64,000 nt of DNA, from the sequence record MH221129.1. The stretch is one strand, 5' to 3'. The position numbers were made by a program, and so were the translations under genes. How positions within the stretch are numbered: the first letter of the stretch is position 1; every line of letters begins with the position of its first letter. Below the pieces are notes generated by a model that made no database searches, was not told the DNA's origin, and was given only the letters and a program-made list of their open reading frames with translations. This document shows positions 23,115 through 30,484 of the stretch, piece after piece.

Positions 23115-23144
23115 TGATGCCTCCGGAGAAATAAAAAAAATAAA

Positions 23145-23172
23145 GCTACCACACATATGATCGTGTGGTAGC
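23145..23172 (-). terminator. Terminator, 10-bp stem
   Basis: GCTACCACAC-atatgatc-GTGTGGTAGC with A-tract 23131-23144 on plus. Confidence 0.8.
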
Positions 23173-23179
23173 CGTTTCA

Positions 23180-24192: not shown

Positions 24193-24597
24193 TTAATTCT
24201 CCTTAAGATTGGCGGCGTCAAGCTCGCCCATGTAAATAACTTCGTAGCCGAACCATTCACCGATTTCGATGAGATACGAAACCAACAAATGGCGGTGGCA
24301 GAACTTCCCCGGAGGACAATAGCACATAAGCACCACCTCTTCCTGCCGGAGAATATCAATTAGCTTATCGGTATCTTCATCAAATAACCGATTGAGCTTT
24401 TGCAAATAACGTACTGTGTAAGCGGCTTCTGCTTCTGGACCTTTATCAGACTGTTTATAGTCCATCAAGAAATCCCAATCCGGGGCCAGATACTTCAGCC
24501 CCGTTTTGACAGTGATGTCCAGCTTAGGTATACCTTGCTGGTCAGCTTTGCGCCACTTCGCCAGTTGGAGCGTCCACAGTTTTACTTGCTTTGGCAT
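24193..24597 (-). CDS. DUF488-like protein
   Basis: LAPDW, Y..RY..L and VLMCYC...CHRHLL motifs characteristic of DUF488-type proteins. Confidence 0.6.
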   Translation of the reverse strand: MPKQVKLWTLQLAKWRKADQQGIPKLDITVKTGLKYLAPDWDFLMDYKQSDKGPEAEAAYTVRYLQKLNRLFDEDTDKLIDILRQEEVVLMCYCPPGKFCHRHLLVSYLIEIGEWFGYEVIYMGELDAANLKEN

Positions 24598-25549
24598 TTC
24601 TCTCGCGCTCCTTTTCCCGTTCCTGTAGCGCTTTGAAGTCGGGAGAGAGACCGCACCACTCTTCCGCTGTGTACGCCGTAATCACCAAGCGTTCAGCATC
24701 TTCATGCACTGTGTAAGGTTCAGGTCGTCGATGCAGATGGCGATACTGAGCCGCCTTCGGGACGGATAATCCCAACTTGGATACCGATGCCCCTAGTTTG
24801 GAGTACCAGAAATCTTTGTAGGGTTGATTTATAGATATCCGCCAAGCAACAGCTGGATTGATGCCGATACTGTTATAGTAGCGTGACTTCGCACACGGAT
24901 TAGCATACACCCACAACATGCGCTGCTCGCGGTCAAAGGCGAACTCGTAGTTGTTGAAGTTACTGACCTGAATCAGTTCACGAATGTTCTCCGGGAGGTC
25001 ACTCCACATTTCAGTTTTATCTTTATCCCAGGCTGGGGTTTGTAATGGCGGAATACGACCAGCGTGATCTTGAAAATACATTATCTCGCTGTATAGTTTC
25101 TTCAAACGGGCGTATTCGTCCAAAGACCAGTCGCCCATCGAATGACTATTTTCCAGAGCATCCATTTTATTCCACCCAAGATAAGCGGCGGAGTGATGCT
25201 CCTTACGTGTGATCCCGTGCATCAGCTTAGCTAACCCCTGAACCACATTACCTTGCTGTATCAACGGTGACCACCCATTCGGGTGGTTAGGCGTTGTTAG
25301 CGGCTCAAAGCAGTCTTCTGTTAATGTTGCCCAAGTAACATGATCAACACGTGCGTGGTGCAAATCCATTAGACGTTCCACGATAGCGACAGACATCAAC
25401 ATCTCCATGAAGTTGGCATCACCGCCATTCCACATGGAGAAATACGCCGGTCGCACGTAGTGGGCTTCTGTAGGCGTAGCCTTGCACATCAGCTGGTACA
25501 TTATCCAGGTGGAATCTAACCCCGCTGAAAATGAAACAAGCTTGGTCAT
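24542..25549 (-). CDS. PP-loop ATP pyrophosphatase, QueC-like (335 aa)
   Basis: N-terminal LVSFSAGLDST PP-loop (SGGxDS variant); no C-terminal CxxCxxC zinc site. Confidence 0.6.
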   Translation of the reverse strand: MTKLVSFSAGLDSTWIMYQLMCKATPTEAHYVRPAYFSMWNGGDANFMEMLMSVAIVERLMDLHHARVDHVTWATLTEDCFEPLTTPNHPNGWSPLIQQGNVVQGLAKLMHGITRKEHHSAAYLGWNKMDALENSHSMGDWSLDEYARLKKLYSEIMYFQDHAGRIPPLQTPAWDKDKTEMWSDLPENIRELIQVSNFNNYEFAFDREQRMLWVYANPCAKSRYYNSIGINPAVAWRISINQPYKDFWYSKLGASVSKLGLSVPKAAQYRHLHRRPEPYTVHEDAERLVITAYTAEEWCGLSPDFKALQEREKERERNAKASKTVDAPTGEVAQS

Positions 25550-25557
25550 CCGTTACC

Positions 25558-25890
25558 TCACTTTTGTTTCTGTTTTTCTTCACGCATCAGCTTAGCATTC
25601 AGGTCAACCATGTAATCCGGCTTTTCCATCACCTGGACTTCTTCCCAGTTGCTACCCACGGTCATTTTAAGAGTGCCTTGACGCACCGCAATTTCTTTCG
25701 CGGTGTCTCGACAGACCTCTAACGCTTCGTCTAAATCATTAAAGGTCGTTTTCTGTGGCCCGTTAAAGGTTTTAGCGCATTCCAGGAACACACGTTCGTA
25801 AACGTCCTGGTCGAGTAAGAGTGGTTTGTCCGCAGCCTGGACAACCATAGGCGCAACAAGTGCGCCTAACAGAACTAAAACTTTTTTCAT
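25558..25890 (-). CDS. Exported protein with signal peptide and two Cys
   Basis: MKKVLVLLGALVAPMVVQA-ADK Sec-type signal. Confidence 0.7.
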   Translation of the reverse strand: MKKVLVLLGALVAPMVVQAADKPLLLDQDVYERVFLECAKTFNGPQKTTFNDLDEALEVCRDTAKEIAVRQGTLKMTVGSNWEEVQVMEKPDYMVDLNAKLMREEKQKQK

Positions 25891-25893
25891 GGC

Positions 25894-26343
25894 TTAGCCT
25901 ACCAAATCGATGGTGATGATTTTGTCGACGTGACCTTTTTCGTTTGCCAGTCCACGGATAGCAAACGTTGGTCCCGATTTCTCTTCGTTCAGTAAGTCAC
26001 GCAATACCGAAGCGTGTGGTCCCCAAGGACGCAACTCTGCAACAGCCTGCTGGCCACGCACGCGAATGTTAGACAGCGCACCACAAACATTGCTGTAGTT
26101 CACTGCAGACTGACGGCAGATAAAGCGGTCACTGTCTGCTGGGTTGTTGACATTCAGATAAGACAAGTCCGGCTGACCAAACTCGCAGAATACACGAGGC
26201 TGTCGAACCATTCCACGTACCAACTTTTTAAGCGATGTGTTCTGATCGTACACCACACCAAACGCATTTGGCTTTGATAAATCCGCCAGTGTCACTTCGA
26301 ACCATTGATCCGATTCCCCAACCACTTTCTTAATATCCATCAA
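25894..26343 (-). CDS. Degenerate paralog of phiKZ-type (S80) prohead protease
   Basis: FEVTL, CEFGQP, RPWGP, FAIRG, IITIDLV are colinear with the S80 motifs GEYGHP, PxGP, FSxRS, IVTWDxV; His and Ser positions substituted. Confidence 0.55.
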   Translation of the reverse strand: MMDIKKVVGESDQWFEVTLADLSKPNAFGVVYDQNTSLKKLVRGMVRQPRVFCEFGQPDLSYLNVNNPADSDRFICRQSAVNYSNVCGALSNIRVRGQQAVAELRPWGPHASVLRDLLNEEKSGPTFAIRGLANEKGHVDKIITIDLVG

Positions 26344-26358
26344 ATTGCTCCTTACGTT

Positions 26359-26562
26359 TTATTGAATAGCTTCTCTAATTAACGGCGCGATAACCAACAT
26401 CATGTACGGGACACCGACGATTATCCCAGTAATCGCCGCACCGAAAACAAACAACAACTGACCAGCGAGATCTTTATCTTTCGTAAACCGTGGGAGACTG
26501 AAAAGATGTCCAATCCCCACAAGTGCCAACAGGATTACAACAACATGTAACGCAATTAACAT
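26359..26562 (-). CDS. Small two-TM membrane protein
   Basis: ORF track; hydrophobic. Confidence 0.7.
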   Translation of the reverse strand: MLIALHVVVILLALVGIGHLFSLPRFTKDKDLAGQLLFVFGAAITGIIVGVPYMMLVIAPLIREAIQ

Positions 26563-28316
26563 ATACGTTCCTTATCTAAAGTTCGTAGTGTTTCCCCACG
26601 AATATCCCAGACTGGATGCTGCGATGAATCGTACAGCGCCGGTTGGAATATTTCATGCACGATGTCTGCTAAACGACGCGCACCTAAATCATCAACACGG
26701 TTGGCCTCAACAGTACGTTCAGCAATGTACTGGTAAGTGTCCATGTCGTATTTAGTTTCTACGTTGTCGGTTTTCAGCAGCTTCATCATGCCGTGGAACT
26801 CACTGTTGTCGAGTTTGCAGATGGCAATGAGCGCACCTTCGTCCAATGGTTCCATCTGAGCACGTAGTGGGAAACGTCCTTGTAGCTCTGGCATTAACTT
26901 CGACGGAGGGGCGTCTGCGAAGCTCCCTGCAGCCACGAAAAGAATATTGGTAGTATCGATGCCGTGATAGTTTCCGCCTTCTACAAGCTTTAACAGACCG
27001 CGTTGTACGCCACTACGCGATACATGGCTATTCGAGCTACCACCCCGCTCAATAAGTTTGTCAAACTCATCTAAGAACACCACCGCAAAGTTCTCAACGA
27101 AGTCATGCCCGTTACAGTTAGGCAGCTTTTTGAGGTCTTGGCGGTTGATTGTTTCTTTTTCCGGTTCGGGTTCTTTCTTGATTTCGTAGGACCACGGACG
27201 TGGGTCAGCGTATTTGGTAAATTCCGGAGAACCCTCAAAGGTGTTGTCCCACCATTCGCACCACTTTTCAGGTGTTTCTAATCGCCGTAGCATGTCGAAA
27301 GTAAAACTGGTCGCGTCACGCGGTATCCAATTAATACCCGCTGGCTCCACACCCTCTTCATTGCCATCGAAAGTATCAAAGCCGTCCCAGAAATGCGAAC
27401 CGTCCGCACAAGACAAGTCCAGATTACTCGACATTAATTCTTGACCACAATCGATGTACATGTCGACGTGTTCCCCGATGGCCATCAGCGACATAATCTC
27501 AGCCATAAACGCTAACGCGCCAGGCCCTTCGCCACCCATAATCTCATCGAGGCGTTGGTCGACGTTATTCGTATTCAAGAAGTCCGTTATAGAATCCAGA
27601 CCAAACATCGTCTGCACCATTTCGGTGATAACCGTCAACCACTCCTGAACAGTACGACCGCCAAGGATAACTTCGTAAATATCAAAGTCGTCGTACCCCA
27701 TTGAGTGCTCGTGGCAATAGCCGACCATGAACGCACGCAAACAGTAAATGTCCTGAATTTCCTCGTAGAGATCTTTCTCATCGAGAATACCCTGTCGACG
27801 CAATAGCGCGGTGTGGTCGCGTTTAGCTTGAATTTCTAGCTGACGCTCCGCATCCCGCTCGTTTCGCTCACGCTCGACTTGTTTGCGAGATTCTTTCTCC
27901 CATTGGTCACGCGTCAAACGACCGTCCTGTTCTTCCTTCTCTACTTTGCGACGGGTACGCATTTCGATATACCAGTCGGGAAGATGGACAGAGCCGGCCA
28001 GCTCAGCAAGGTCCTTGCCGATTGATGTCACCTCACGACCCACATACCCGCTCTCGGTATATGCCGTCATGTCAAGTTCCAGGACAGGTAAACCGAACTG
28101 TGTTTTCAGCACGCGCATTAACGCAGTCTTACCCGTACCAGTAGGCCCCACAATCAACAAGTTTTGTTTGTGGACGGATAGGCGGTCAGGTGCATTGAGT
28201 TTGTTCACGCGATAACGGTTACGCATCGCGATGGCTAACATCTTCTTCGCTTGCATTTGCCCGTAGACGTATCGGTCGAAAATCTTGACGATCTCGACCG
28301 GAGTTAATTTCTCCAT
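26556..28316 (-). CDS. hslU: HslU-like AAA+ ATPase (586 aa) with unrelated large I-domain
   Basis: LTPVEIV..GQ..AKK..AIAMRNR, Walker A GPTGTGKT, GYVG, Walker B VFLDEFDK, GVQRGLL, PELQGRFP, GARRL all match HslU. Confidence 0.9.
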   Translation of the reverse strand: MEKLTPVEIVKIFDRYVYGQMQAKKMLAIAMRNRYRVNKLNAPDRLSVHKQNLLIVGPTGTGKTALMRVLKTQFGLPVLELDMTAYTESGYVGREVTSIGKDLAELAGSVHLPDWYIEMRTRRKVEKEEQDGRLTRDQWEKESRKQVERERNERDAERQLEIQAKRDHTALLRRQGILDEKDLYEEIQDIYCLRAFMVGYCHEHSMGYDDFDIYEVILGGRTVQEWLTVITEMVQTMFGLDSITDFLNTNNVDQRLDEIMGGEGPGALAFMAEIMSLMAIGEHVDMYIDCGQELMSSNLDLSCADGSHFWDGFDTFDGNEEGVEPAGINWIPRDATSFTFDMLRRLETPEKWCEWWDNTFEGSPEFTKYADPRPWSYEIKKEPEPEKETINRQDLKKLPNCNGHDFVENFAVVFLDEFDKLIERGGSSNSHVSRSGVQRGLLKLVEGGNYHGIDTTNILFVAAGSFADAPPSKLMPELQGRFPLRAQMEPLDEGALIAICKLDNSEFHGMMKLLKTDNVETKYDMDTYQYIAERTVEANRVDDLGARRLADIVHEIFQPALYDSSQHPVWDIRGETLRTLDKERIC

Positions 28317-28327
28317 GATGGCCCCTA

Positions 28328-28813
28328 TTAGTCTCGTTTACGGATGAACGTCATCTCACCCTGCCGCGGCTGTAGTTCGTTCACCAAATCCCACGTTTCA
28401 ATTTGTTGGATAAGATTGTCGCTATCCAACGTCTTACGGGCAGAGAGCAACGCACCTTTGTTAATGATACAATGAACCAGTGCGTCGTGCTTGTGTACGA
28501 ATCCGGGAACAAAACGACCACTAACGACCACACGATCTTCTGTTACGGTAACCCGACCATCCTGTATACTCCCACAAGCATTTTCAGGAACAACCGTACG
28601 CCAGCGATGCACAGTCCTCAGTATACCTGTTCGGGTTTCCACAGGGTGTCCGTATTCGCACACCGCTGTGCCGTTCAACAGGCGACGGAAAGCACTTTCA
28701 GGATGTTCATAGTCAGCGAAAGCGACCCGTGGTAAATCTAACAACACCCCGCTCACTTCCATGCTCGACAGAAAAGCATCAAAGTCTGGAGCATGTACCA
28801 TTTCAAGCTTCAT
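28328..28813 (-). CDS. Degenerate paralog of phiKZ-type (S80) prohead protease
   Basis: CEYGHP, R..V..ENAC, LSARK, IETWDLVNE. Confidence 0.55.
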   Translation of the reverse strand: MKLEMVHAPDFDAFLSSMEVSGVLLDLPRVAFADYEHPESAFRRLLNGTAVCEYGHPVETRTGILRTVHRWRTVVPENACGSIQDGRVTVTEDRVVVSGRFVPGFVHKHDALVHCIINKGALLSARKTLDSDNLIQQIETWDLVNELQPRQGEMTFIRKRD

Positions 28814-28815
28814 GC

Positions 28816-29466
28816 TTACCCCTCTAATATTGTTTCAGCAACCTTCCGATATTCATCCGTACGGTTAATGCGTTCAGACACCACGCAGTTAAACTTACGA
28901 TGGTCAACCAGCAACATCATGGCCAGTTCTTGACGACTCACAATGAGTTTGTCTTCCGGCCAATGGGTATCGCGTTCCAGTAAACCGGAAGCGATGAAGT
29001 TTTCTGCCAACCGGTCATCAGACTCTGCGAGGTCGTAATGATCGTTAGGCGCAGCAAAGAATGCCCAGCCAATATAGTTCGGATCGTTCATCCACTCTTC
29101 TGGTTTGGTGTGCTCAACCAGATGGCGCACGTTCTCTGTGAAGTCACTTAGGGTGAAGTCAGTCTGCGACATGATGGCGGTATCCATTTGGATTTCACCA
29201 TCGTTATCGTAGAAATGCCCCATCCACATTTTCCATTCCCGTGGGTCATGGAACAACGTAGAAGCTAGAGCATCACTAACCACCCGACGAATCTGCGGCT
29301 TCACGGTGAAGTGGAAACCACGACCACCGTACGGCTGCAATTGACGGTTAGACGCGCCGATAAACGCGATACGGTTCAGCGCGTTTTCACACGTTAAGCG
29401 TGCGGTTTCTTCGAAGGCTTTAACAGGACTATATTTTTTAGTGCGGGCTTTTTTCTGCTTGCTCAT
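28816..29466 (-). CDS. Hypothetical protein with KKARTKKYSP basic N-terminus
   Basis: ORF track. Confidence 0.75.
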   Translation of the reverse strand: MSKQKKARTKKYSPVKAFEETARLTCENALNRIAFIGASNRQLQPYGGRGFHFTVKPQIRRVVSDALASTLFHDPREWKMWMGHFYDNDGEIQMDTAIMSQTDFTLSDFTENVRHLVEHTKPEEWMNDPNYIGWAFFAAPNDHYDLAESDDRLAENFIASGLLERDTHWPEDKLIVSRQELAMMLLVDHRKFNCVVSERINRTDEYRKVAETILEG

Positions 29467-29945
29467 TTTTTGCGGAATACCTTGTATGCTGCGTCATTAA
29501 GAATTTTACGAACCTTGCGAAGGGTCGGTTCCGTGTGAGTATACTCGTAAGAGATTTTCCAGGCGTTGTACGTGTCTTTCAACGTCAAGTCTTCTACGAA
29601 GTACATCGTCTCTAGCGGGGCATCGGGGTAGATCAACCGACACATCGAGAGCAACCACAACGGGGCCAACTCGCTCCCCATGAGTTCTTCCATAAACTCA
29701 TCTAACAGCGGGAGTGCTTCTGCACCTAACGCCAAGACGATATGGCAGTTCCCTGGTACGTTCTTTTTGGAGTAAGGGCCATGCCCTTGACAGGCCCACA
29801 CGGTGGTTGCTAACGGGTGTTTGTTGATAACCCTACAGGTATCTTCCACACCCTTCTCAATCCATCCTTCATCGAGCGCTTTAAACGTTCGTCGTTTGAA
29901 TTTGTTCAAGTCCCGGACCCCGACGCTACCGTAACGGTGCTTCAT
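29463..29945 (-). CDS. Hypothetical protein, TVWACQGH motif
   Basis: ORF track; paralog of 29973..30437. Confidence 0.7.
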   Translation of the reverse strand: MKHRYGSVGVRDLNKFKRRTFKALDEGWIEKGVEDTCRVINKHPLATTVWACQGHGPYSKKNVPGNCHIVLALGAEALPLLDEFMEELMGSELAPLWLLSMCRLIYPDAPLETMYFVEDLTLKDTYNAWKISYEYTHTEPTLRKVRKILNDAAYKVFRKK

Positions 29946-29972: not shown

Positions 29973-30437
29973 TTAAAGGTCGTTATTTGTAAAAACTGCG
30001 ATAGCCAGCCAATGCTTCATTACAGATTCGACCACATCAGGTTCGGGGCGGTAGTTCAGACGGAATACCCAGGCTGGGTACGTTTCTGTCCGGGTGTCTT
30101 CTTTAAAGAGATGCTGTGTTGTAATCTGCATCCGGTTATGGAGTTCGTGTTTCTGCCACTCTTCAGCAATCCGGCTTATCAACGGCAGACCAGCTTCGGT
30201 ACAAACAAACGTGAGGCTATGTGGACGGCGGGTACGGTACTTTTCGCCTTCCAGACGTACTTCACCAGTGAATGCCCAAACGGTAGCGATATGCGGCCAT
30301 TTAAGAAACGCTTCCACAACAGCACGCATACGTGGGTCAACGGGTTTATCAGCATTCAGCGCGAGGGTAGTGCGCTGTTTGTACGCGGCCAATTCCGCTT
30401 CACTGACTACTGAATATTTAAACATAACGATTCCCAA
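29973..30437 (-). CDS. Hypothetical protein, ATVWAFTG motif
   Basis: ORF track; paralog of 29463..29945. Confidence 0.7.
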   Translation of the reverse strand: MGIVMFKYSVVSEAELAAYKQRTTLALNADKPVDPRMRAVVEAFLKWPHIATVWAFTGEVRLEGEKYRTRRPHSLTFVCTEAGLPLISRIAEEWQKHELHNRMQITTQHLFKEDTRTETYPAWVFRLNYRPEPDVVESVMKHWLAIAVFTNNDL

Positions 30438-30458: not shown

Positions 30459-30484
30459 CCCTACCTAACCGGAGTTAGGTAGGG
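30459..30484 (-). terminator. Terminator, 11-bp stem
   Basis: CCCTACCTAAC-cgga-GTTAGGTAGGG with A-rich tract on plus. Confidence 0.8.

Follow-up and report, generated by a model that had tools for sequence, protein, structure and literature searches.

An HslU-like gene between two small prohead-protease paralogs in the Salmonella jumbo phage SPAsTU

The four-gene cluster

The window analysed here is a 64,000-nt stretch, nt 1-64000 of the genome of Salmonella jumbo phage SPAsTU (MH221129.1, 250.7 kb). SPAsTU, an SPN3US-related Seoulvirus, is found among the nucleus-forming jumbo phages. The subject of this report is a cluster of four minus-strand genes in this window, in which a gene for an HslU-like AAA+ unfoldase (26556..28316, 586 amino acids (aa)) is located between two genes for short paralogs of the S80 prohead protease. 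The upstream paralog, open reading frame (ORF) B, is encoded at 28328..28813 and comprises 161 aa. The downstream paralog, ORF A, is encoded at 25894..26340 and comprises 148 aa. Between hslU and A lies a small ORF (26359..26562, 67 aa) whose product is predicted by hydropathy and sequence comparison to form two hydrophobic helices. All four ORFs are present in the ORF list as reported in the initial annotation, which had been made from the sequence of the window, and the small transmembrane protein mentioned there corresponds to the two-helix product. Its homolog is Huxley gp131; the gene tables of SPLA3 and phage 1252 do not contain it. The gaps in the cluster amount to 11, 15 and 3 nt, and the hslU stop codon overlaps the start of the small ORF by 7 nt. 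For A, translation had been assumed to begin at a TTG at 26343, which would yield 149 aa. The ATG at 26340 is likelier, as it is found 7 nt past an AAGGAG sequence. In GenBank, 25894-26340 is labelled 'virion structural protein' and 26556-28316 'heat shock protein ATPase subunit HslU domain-containing protein', while B and the small ORF are hypothetical. An identical 5-kb region is also present in MH221128.1 (Salmonella phage STsAS, 197 kb) at 97065-102065, where A, hslU and B carry no annotated feature.

An HslU-like protein with an enlarged I-domain and a shortened C-terminus

Judged by its sequence, the product of the middle gene can be regarded as a real HslU homolog. It matches E. coli HslU (PDB 1g4a) with an E-value of 4.5e-51 in two stretches, residues 1-119 and 389-566, and phrog_4339 with an E-value of 9e-148. 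Walker A, the GYVG pore loop, Walker B, the Arg finger and sensor-2 are without exception invariant in an alignment that comprises E. coli HslU and four phage homologs. The initial assignment as an HslU-like unfoldase is thus upheld by both the match to E. coli HslU and the intact ATPase and pore motifs. However, the phage protein differs from bacterial HslU (ClpY) in several respects. Its score against TIGR00390 (223.9 bits) is below the equivalog cut-off of 362.45. Its I-domain is inserted at the same point as in E. coli HslU, but with ~285 aa (residues ~105-389) instead of ~130 it is about twice as long, and its sequence is unrelated. This enlarged I-domain is kept among the phage homologs in the alignment. 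Furthermore, the gene is not in an operon with hslV.

The most conspicuous difference concerns the C-terminus. In bacteria, the C-terminal tail of HslU is required for the activation of HslV. The phage proteins stop ~13 residues before the end of E. coli HslU, and their last 8-12 residues are not conserved mutually. The HslV-docking segment is missing in the homologs from SPAsTU, SPLA3, Huxley and Kwan. Therefore, canonical docking to the HslV of the host is unlikely.

Another HslU-like AAA+ protein, gp116, has been reported in Erwinia phage RAY (Prichard et al., 2023, PMC10299810). Like the SPAsTU gene, it is an accessory, non-core gene of a nucleus-forming jumbo phage. By contrast, both proteins share only ~31% identity over half their length, they differ in the I-domain and the C-terminus, and RAY has no S80 paralog within 5 kb of its gene.

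The short S80 prohead-protease paralogs A and B

Both A and B are homologous to the S80 prohead protease, as had been proposed initially; profile, hidden Markov model (HMM) and fold matches all point to this family. A matches Pfam PF20034 (Peptidase_S80) with 36.1 bits (E 5e-9), above the gathering score of 23.4, and phrog_7478 ('head maturation protease') with an E-value of 6.5e-30. B attains 17.6 bits against PF20034, which is under the gathering score, and an E-value of 2e-18 against phrog_7478. An HMM built from seven small paralogs only retrieves phiKZ gp175 (E 3.7e-9), SPN3US gp245 and the SPAsTU protease itself, and tblastn with A alone reaches the true proteases of PhiEaH1-like and Serratia phages. 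The AlphaFold2 (AF2) model of B has a predicted local distance difference test (pLDDT) score of 85.6. In a Foldseek search of BFVD, it matched prohead-protease folds together with many small uncharacterised jumbo-phage proteins (34 hits with E<1e-3). Against the PDB, the top matches were T4 gp21 and herpesvirus (human cytomegalovirus) proteases, both weak (E 0.035, template modelling score 0.39). The hhalign comparison of the family with the single T4 gp21 sequence was likewise weak (probability 0.3) and covered the GExxHP region only. B is counted in the S80 superfamily because of phrog_7478, the reciprocal HMM hits and the fold matches.

SPAsTU encodes a separate canonical S80 protease at 158128-158931 of MH221129 (290 bits). 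With the S80 proteases phiKZ gp175 and SPN3US gp245, A and B share the GExxHP, NVC, PxGP, SxR and TWD motifs and the assemblin-like fold. In contrast to them, both are devoid of the C-terminal propeptide: A ends 3 and B 19 residues past the catalytic Asp, whereas gp245 runs ~89 residues further. In prohead proteases, this propeptide targets the enzyme into proheads (PMC7411985). The product of another gene, phrog_11712, which in Huxley, Kwan, Asesino and pEa_SNUABM_29 is encoded upstream of hslU, was considered as a third, very diverged S80 paralog and discarded, as neither an HMM hit nor a link through Pfam or PHROG was obtained.

Catalytic residues of A and B

The catalytic triad of SPN3US gp245 consists of H77, S153 and D178 (PMC5694885). 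Substitution S153A abolishes self-cleavage of gp245 (PMC7411985), and in T4 gp21 the H85A/S140A double mutant has been used as catalytically dead form (PMC12991175). In our alignments, H77 of gp245 falls in GExxHP, S153 in SxR and D178 in T(W/F)D. The equivalents of the catalytic His in GExxHP are H77 in gp245, H89 in phiKZ gp175 and H85 in T4 gp21. T4 gp21 displays the same motifs in the form of GELNHP (H85) and SSR (S140), the SxR match being taken from the sequence itself and not from hhalign.

This register alters the view of both paralogs. The initial annotation had the His segment replaced by NVCG or NACG in A and B, and had regarded the conserved Cys therein as a feature of the paralogs and a conceivable nucleophile. 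However, the catalytic His resides in GExxHP, and the Cys of NVC (C102 in gp245) is also conserved in the true proteases. The triad positions, compared across 33 aligned family members, are occupied by Gln57, Ala128 and Asp146 in A and by His56, Ser124 and Asp142 in B. The third residue, Asp, is invariant in 33/33 sequences. Hence, of the two proteins claimed to be catalytically eroded, only A is clearly so, with Gln and Ala in place of His and Ser. That the Ser is lost in one ORF and kept in the other had been recognised correctly. From these residues, A, which also keeps Arg130, can be classified as a pseudoprotease. B keeps the whole published triad and may have retained activity.

A second His, H104 of gp245, is located two residues past C102 in a CxH motif and is invariant in 5/5 true S80 proteases sampled. 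None of the small paralogs retains it, the position being taken by Ala89 in A and by Ser82 in B, and T4 gp21 is without a clear equivalent. Across the small paralogs, Glu74, Arg155 and Asp178 (gp245 numbering) are invariant and Cys102 is nearly so. His77 is kept in 4 lineages only and Ser153 in 6. Among ~25 small-paralog lineages, both occur together only in B and in a relative that is 88% identical to it and stems from a sequencing-run assembly. As a side observation, most small paralogs have an extra Cys in an (F/V)CE motif (gp245 position 73), at a site occupied by Gly, Met or Ser in true proteases. Together with the NVC Cys, the resulting Cys pairs are Cys53 and Cys87 in A and Cys52 and Cys80 in B; if near each other in the fold, they might form a disulfide or a metal site or provide an alternative nucleophile.

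The gp117 family

In 2017, SPN3US gp117 was described as a diverged prohead-protease paralog that came unexpectedly, with homologs in Erwinia phages, two of them in some, and relatives in 201phi2-1 and PhiPA3 (Ali et al., Front Microbiol, PMC5694885). In the published alignment, S126 and D144 of gp117 are aligned and no His is aligned. Our alignment yields the same numbers, S126 and D144, and contains a gp117 His upstream of the aligned position, at a distance of seven residues. HslU is not mentioned in PMC5694885. A and B are members of this family: they belong to the same ~140-165 aa class, show the same loss of the propeptide and lie in the same genomic block (gp115-gp120) beside homologs of gp118, gp119 and the DUF488 protein. 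They differ from gp117 in two respects: B has the catalytic His that gp117 lacks, and SPAsTU possesses an A-type and a B-type copy that are split by hslU. RefSeq already names small paralogs 'head maturation protease'.

In the phylogenetic tree, A-type proteins (support 98/93), B-type proteins including gp117 (99/98) and true proteases (95/91) form separate clades. Therefore, A and B are old paralogs and did not arise by a recent tandem duplication. B is under purifying selection, with a ratio of nonsynonymous to synonymous substitution rates (dN/dS) of 0.07 in comparison with its 88%-identical relative. A is 69% identical to its ortholog in pEa_SNUABM_29.

When 1.84 billion representative proteins were searched with a profile, only 24 clusters were obtained, and searches for related loci with single proteins found few IMG/VR loci. 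A word-index homolog search retrieved 2 hits with B alone and 4 with the A+B profile, the index being too coarse for such a fast-evolving family. Domain fusions (P0015, P0026, Caitlin gp128 and P0011) provided no hint at a function, P0011 being a low-complexity false positive. The BFVD matches to the B model comprise protease-fold proteins of small size (124-160 aa) from many jumbo phages, whose genomes often encode several of them: three copies in Phabio, two in 201phi2-1, and further ones in Psa21, RAY, Eowyn and Miami as well as in T4-like Aeromonas phages. This breadth means that the protease-fold family is much wider than sequence searches show. Since the scaffold is conserved and the nucleophile has been lost repeatedly, the role of the family is probably a mainly non-catalytic, binding one: the conserved job of gp117-family paralogs is most likely to bind, not to cut.

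Occurrence of hslU and S80 paralogs in related phages

The arrangement of the genes varies between phages. In SPAsTU, the order is B, hslU, the two-helix gene and A. In pEa_SNUABM_29 and Caitlin-like phages, it is phrog_11712, hslU, B and A. Huxley has hslU, the two-helix gene and A, and SPLA3 has hslU followed by a B-type gene. In Kwan, a B-type gene is separated by two genes from phrog_11712 and hslU. Stratton contains phrog_11712, B and A and no hslU, and Asesino and phiEaH2 also have paralogs without hslU. Conversely, the hslU genes of the Derbicusvirus type and the RAY type have no S80 paralog within 5-6 kb.

The clearest picture emerges from a comparison of Seoulviruses in which a neighbouring QueC-like gene is 94-99% identical. 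SPLA3 contains both hslU and an S80 paralog. Phage 1252 has hslU only: its HslU is 72.5% identical, and three tblastn queries detected no paralog genome-wide. SPN3US has the paralog only and no hslU. EC001 has neither; all that is left is an HslU stump of 75 aa. An obligate co-occurrence of hslU and S80 paralogs is therefore contradicted, as all four presence/absence states are found in near-identical Seoulviruses. All of these are isolated plaque-forming phages, which means that hslU and the paralogs are both dispensable and separable. Apart from EC001, also Lh1B, JN03 and SPLA1a retain nothing but the beginning of hslU, so that the first 68-75 codons are left in these four phages.

HslV-family peptidases encoded by the phages

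The initial annotation had stated that no HslV is present in the window. This is correct for the 64 kb, where an HMM search found no HslV-like ORF, but it does not hold for the genome. At 136530-137030 of MH221129.1 (minus strand), outside the window and adjoining a tRNA cluster, SPAsTU encodes a 166-aa N-terminal nucleophile (Ntn) peptidase annotated as 'HslV family protein'. It matches phrog_1040 with an E-value of 1e-37 and Pfam Proteasome with only 16 bits. The protein begins with MTT, and T2, D14, K30, G54 and G123-S124-G125 do not vary among 62 homologs. Thus, the catalytic set, composed of the N-terminal Thr and the equivalents of Asp17, Lys33 and Gly-Ser-Gly, is complete. A phmmer search of the PDB with this protein returned nothing, and the kinship was shown by the fold search: the AF2 model (pLDDT 94.7) matched BPH, HslV and 20S beta in Foldseek with a probability of 1.0 and template modelling scores of 0.64-0.71. 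In summary, the peptidase shares Thr1, Asp, Lys, Gly-Ser-Gly and the predicted fold with HslV, BPH and proteasome beta subunits, but it is very divergent from HslV, shorter and unlinked to hslU.

A second, more diverged HslV-like subfamily, represented by Huxley gp125 and Phobos gp123, was found in 19 records of the Machinavirus type and the Derbicusvirus type. In 19/19 records, a phage hslU follows on the same strand, 2.3-3 kb downstream. SPAsTU is without such an hslU-linked copy. Upstream of its cluster, two tandem paralogs without assigned function, both phrog_7413, are encoded at 29463-29945 and 29973-30437 on the minus strand, and they occupy the position of Huxley gp125 and gp126. They were considered as HslV-like candidates and rejected, as the HslV HMM did not match them.

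The surrounding co-directional gene block

According to the initial annotation, the four genes form one operon. Two terminator-like hairpins, which are pattern matches only, bracket a larger co-directional block: one with 11 pairs and a subsequent T-run upstream of the block (30459..30484, minus strand), the other with 12 pairs and a subsequent T-run downstream of it (23144..23173, minus strand). They enclose ~7.3 kb with 13 genes. Therefore, a possible operon would be much larger than the four genes. A promoter scan performed no better than chance (11 found versus 13.5 expected). Phages of this kind transcribe their genes with their own RNA polymerases.

Downstream of A, three further minus-strand genes were inspected. 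A 110-aa homolog of SPN3US gp118 (25558-25890) has a typical signal peptide at its N-terminus (MKKVLVLLGALVAPMVVQA|AD), which is at odds with the published idea that gp118 could have arisen as the C-terminal half split off from an ancestral gp117 protease. The 335-aa protein encoded at 24542-25549 belongs to phrog_8825; it contains an N-terminal SxGxDS motif resembling a PP-loop and has a weak QueC-like match. The gene for a DUF488-N3a protein (24193-24597) overlaps the preceding one by 56 nt. In every relative inspected, the phrog_8825/DUF488-N3a pair is kept on the downstream side of the cluster.

Possible functions of the HslU-like protein and the S80 paralogs

Both gp117-family paralogs and phage HslU are known kinds of genes. 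The explanation that we prefer, and hold to be moderately probable, is that the cluster is an accessory part of a conserved co-directional block in which such genes are neighbours by descent and not obligate partners, with paralogs that bind and an unfoldase that is specific to the phage. A and B are copies of the S80 protease domain without the propeptide; in the cytoplasm they might bind the prohead protease or its A-x-E substrates and thereby act as regulators or decoys. The HslU-like protein would be a phage-specific AAA+ unfoldase that looks functional, and its doubled I-domain might serve substrate choice. If this unfoldase has a partner, the most likely candidate would be the divergent HslV-family Ntn peptidase of the phage itself, which would have to dock in a non-canonical manner. 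The S80 paralogs and the HslV of the host are less likely partners than this peptidase.

Several observations weigh against this explanation. The missing C-terminal tail opposes a pairing of the HslU-like protein with any HslV-like ring by the known mechanism. The HslV-family gene of SPAsTU is located ~108 kb from hslU. Moreover, the phrog_1040 family is found throughout SPN3US-like phages with or without hslU, among the latter SPN3US, and also in 40-50 kb Klebsiella and E. coli phages that lack hslU, and is therefore not a strict HslU partner. As to independence of the neighbours, the gaps of 11 and 15 nt between hslU and the paralogs in SPAsTU suit local coupling, B with its full triad lies directly upstream of hslU, and in every SPN3US-like phage that possesses hslU as well as a small S80 paralog, the two are found within 2 kb of each other, albeit in variable order.

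The chief alternative, less probable than not by a clear distance and still to be reckoned with, is an HslU-like protein that acts as a stand-alone unfoldase or chaperone without any peptidase and remodels phage or host proteins, possibly in the phage nucleus, while the S80 paralogs are unrelated neighbours. Such a role would accommodate the loss of the HslV-docking tail and the short, unconserved C-termini in all SPN3US-type homologs, the dispensability and repeated loss of hslU, and the conservation of the enlarged I-domain among the phage homologs. It would also fit the localisation of the distant homolog RAY gp116, which as a GFP fusion is found in the phage nucleus (PMC10299810). However, the second HslV-like subfamily occurs only in phages that carry hslU and always 2.3-3 kb upstream of it, and SPAsTU encodes a catalytically complete HslV-family protein; both observations speak for a peptidase partner. 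That this partner is the HslV (ClpQ) of the host, so that the phage HslU-like protein would hijack it to form a hybrid protease with substrates chosen by the phage, is very improbable. Although the protein is a bona fide HslU homolog by its match to the E. coli protein and the host possesses HslV (E. coli locus), it has no counterpart of the C-terminal segment by which E. coli HslU inserts into HslV, and the phage has HslV-family proteins of its own.

Closest to the initial proposal would be a new ATP-dependent protease in which HslU feeds unfolded substrates to B as a mini-S80 serine protease and would have lost its HslV-docking tail for this reason, the dead paralog A serves as adaptor that binds A-x-E substrates and the two-helix protein is perhaps an anchor. 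The tight spacing and overlap of the four genes, the adjacency of hslU and paralogs in those SPN3US-like phages that have both, the retained triad of B under purifying selection, the invariance of Arg155 and Glu74 even in dead paralogs, and the lack of a canonical HslV tail would all be compatible with such a machine. Nevertheless, we rate it as improbable: phage 1252 has HslU without a small S80 paralog; SPN3US, Stratton, Asesino and phiEaH2 have paralogs without HslU; the full triad is confined to B and a single relative; and in the closest complete relative both paralogs are encoded downstream of hslU, and neither contains both His and Ser. In addition, no assemblin-fold protease is known to build a chambered ring that docks onto an AAA+ hexamer. 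A replacement proteolytic ring, as suggested initially, is unlikely as a conserved feature, since the catalytic residues vary across the small paralogs. A more restricted version, in which the tail-less HslU was rewired to the mini-S80 serine protease B in SPAsTU and its closest relatives, with A as substrate adaptor and the two-helix protein as membrane anchor, would be an unseen type of AAA+/assemblin-fold protease; this we consider slightly less probable still. As a weaker variant, gp117-family pseudoproteases could be decoys that shield the phage from host sensors of prohead-protease activity, e.g. those of the cyclic-oligonucleotide-based anti-phage signalling system (CBASS; PMC12991175).

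Implications

In the literature searched, four observations were not found: the completeness of the triad in B, the absence of a docking tail from the phage HslU, the hslU-linked HslV-like subfamily and the natural presence/absence matrix. If the preferred, ordinary explanation is true, the HslV-family genes of the phages would be the first candidates for HslU partners, ahead of the HslV of the host or the protease paralogs. The Seoulviruses, which have both genes, either or neither, constitute ready natural variants for learning the function of hslU or the paralog. B is the best candidate for asking whether the small protease-fold proteins of jumbo phages still cut. The activity of a prohead protease triggers CBASS defence (PMC12991175), and in view of this trigger, pseudoproteases that regulate or mimic the prohead protease would be of interest.

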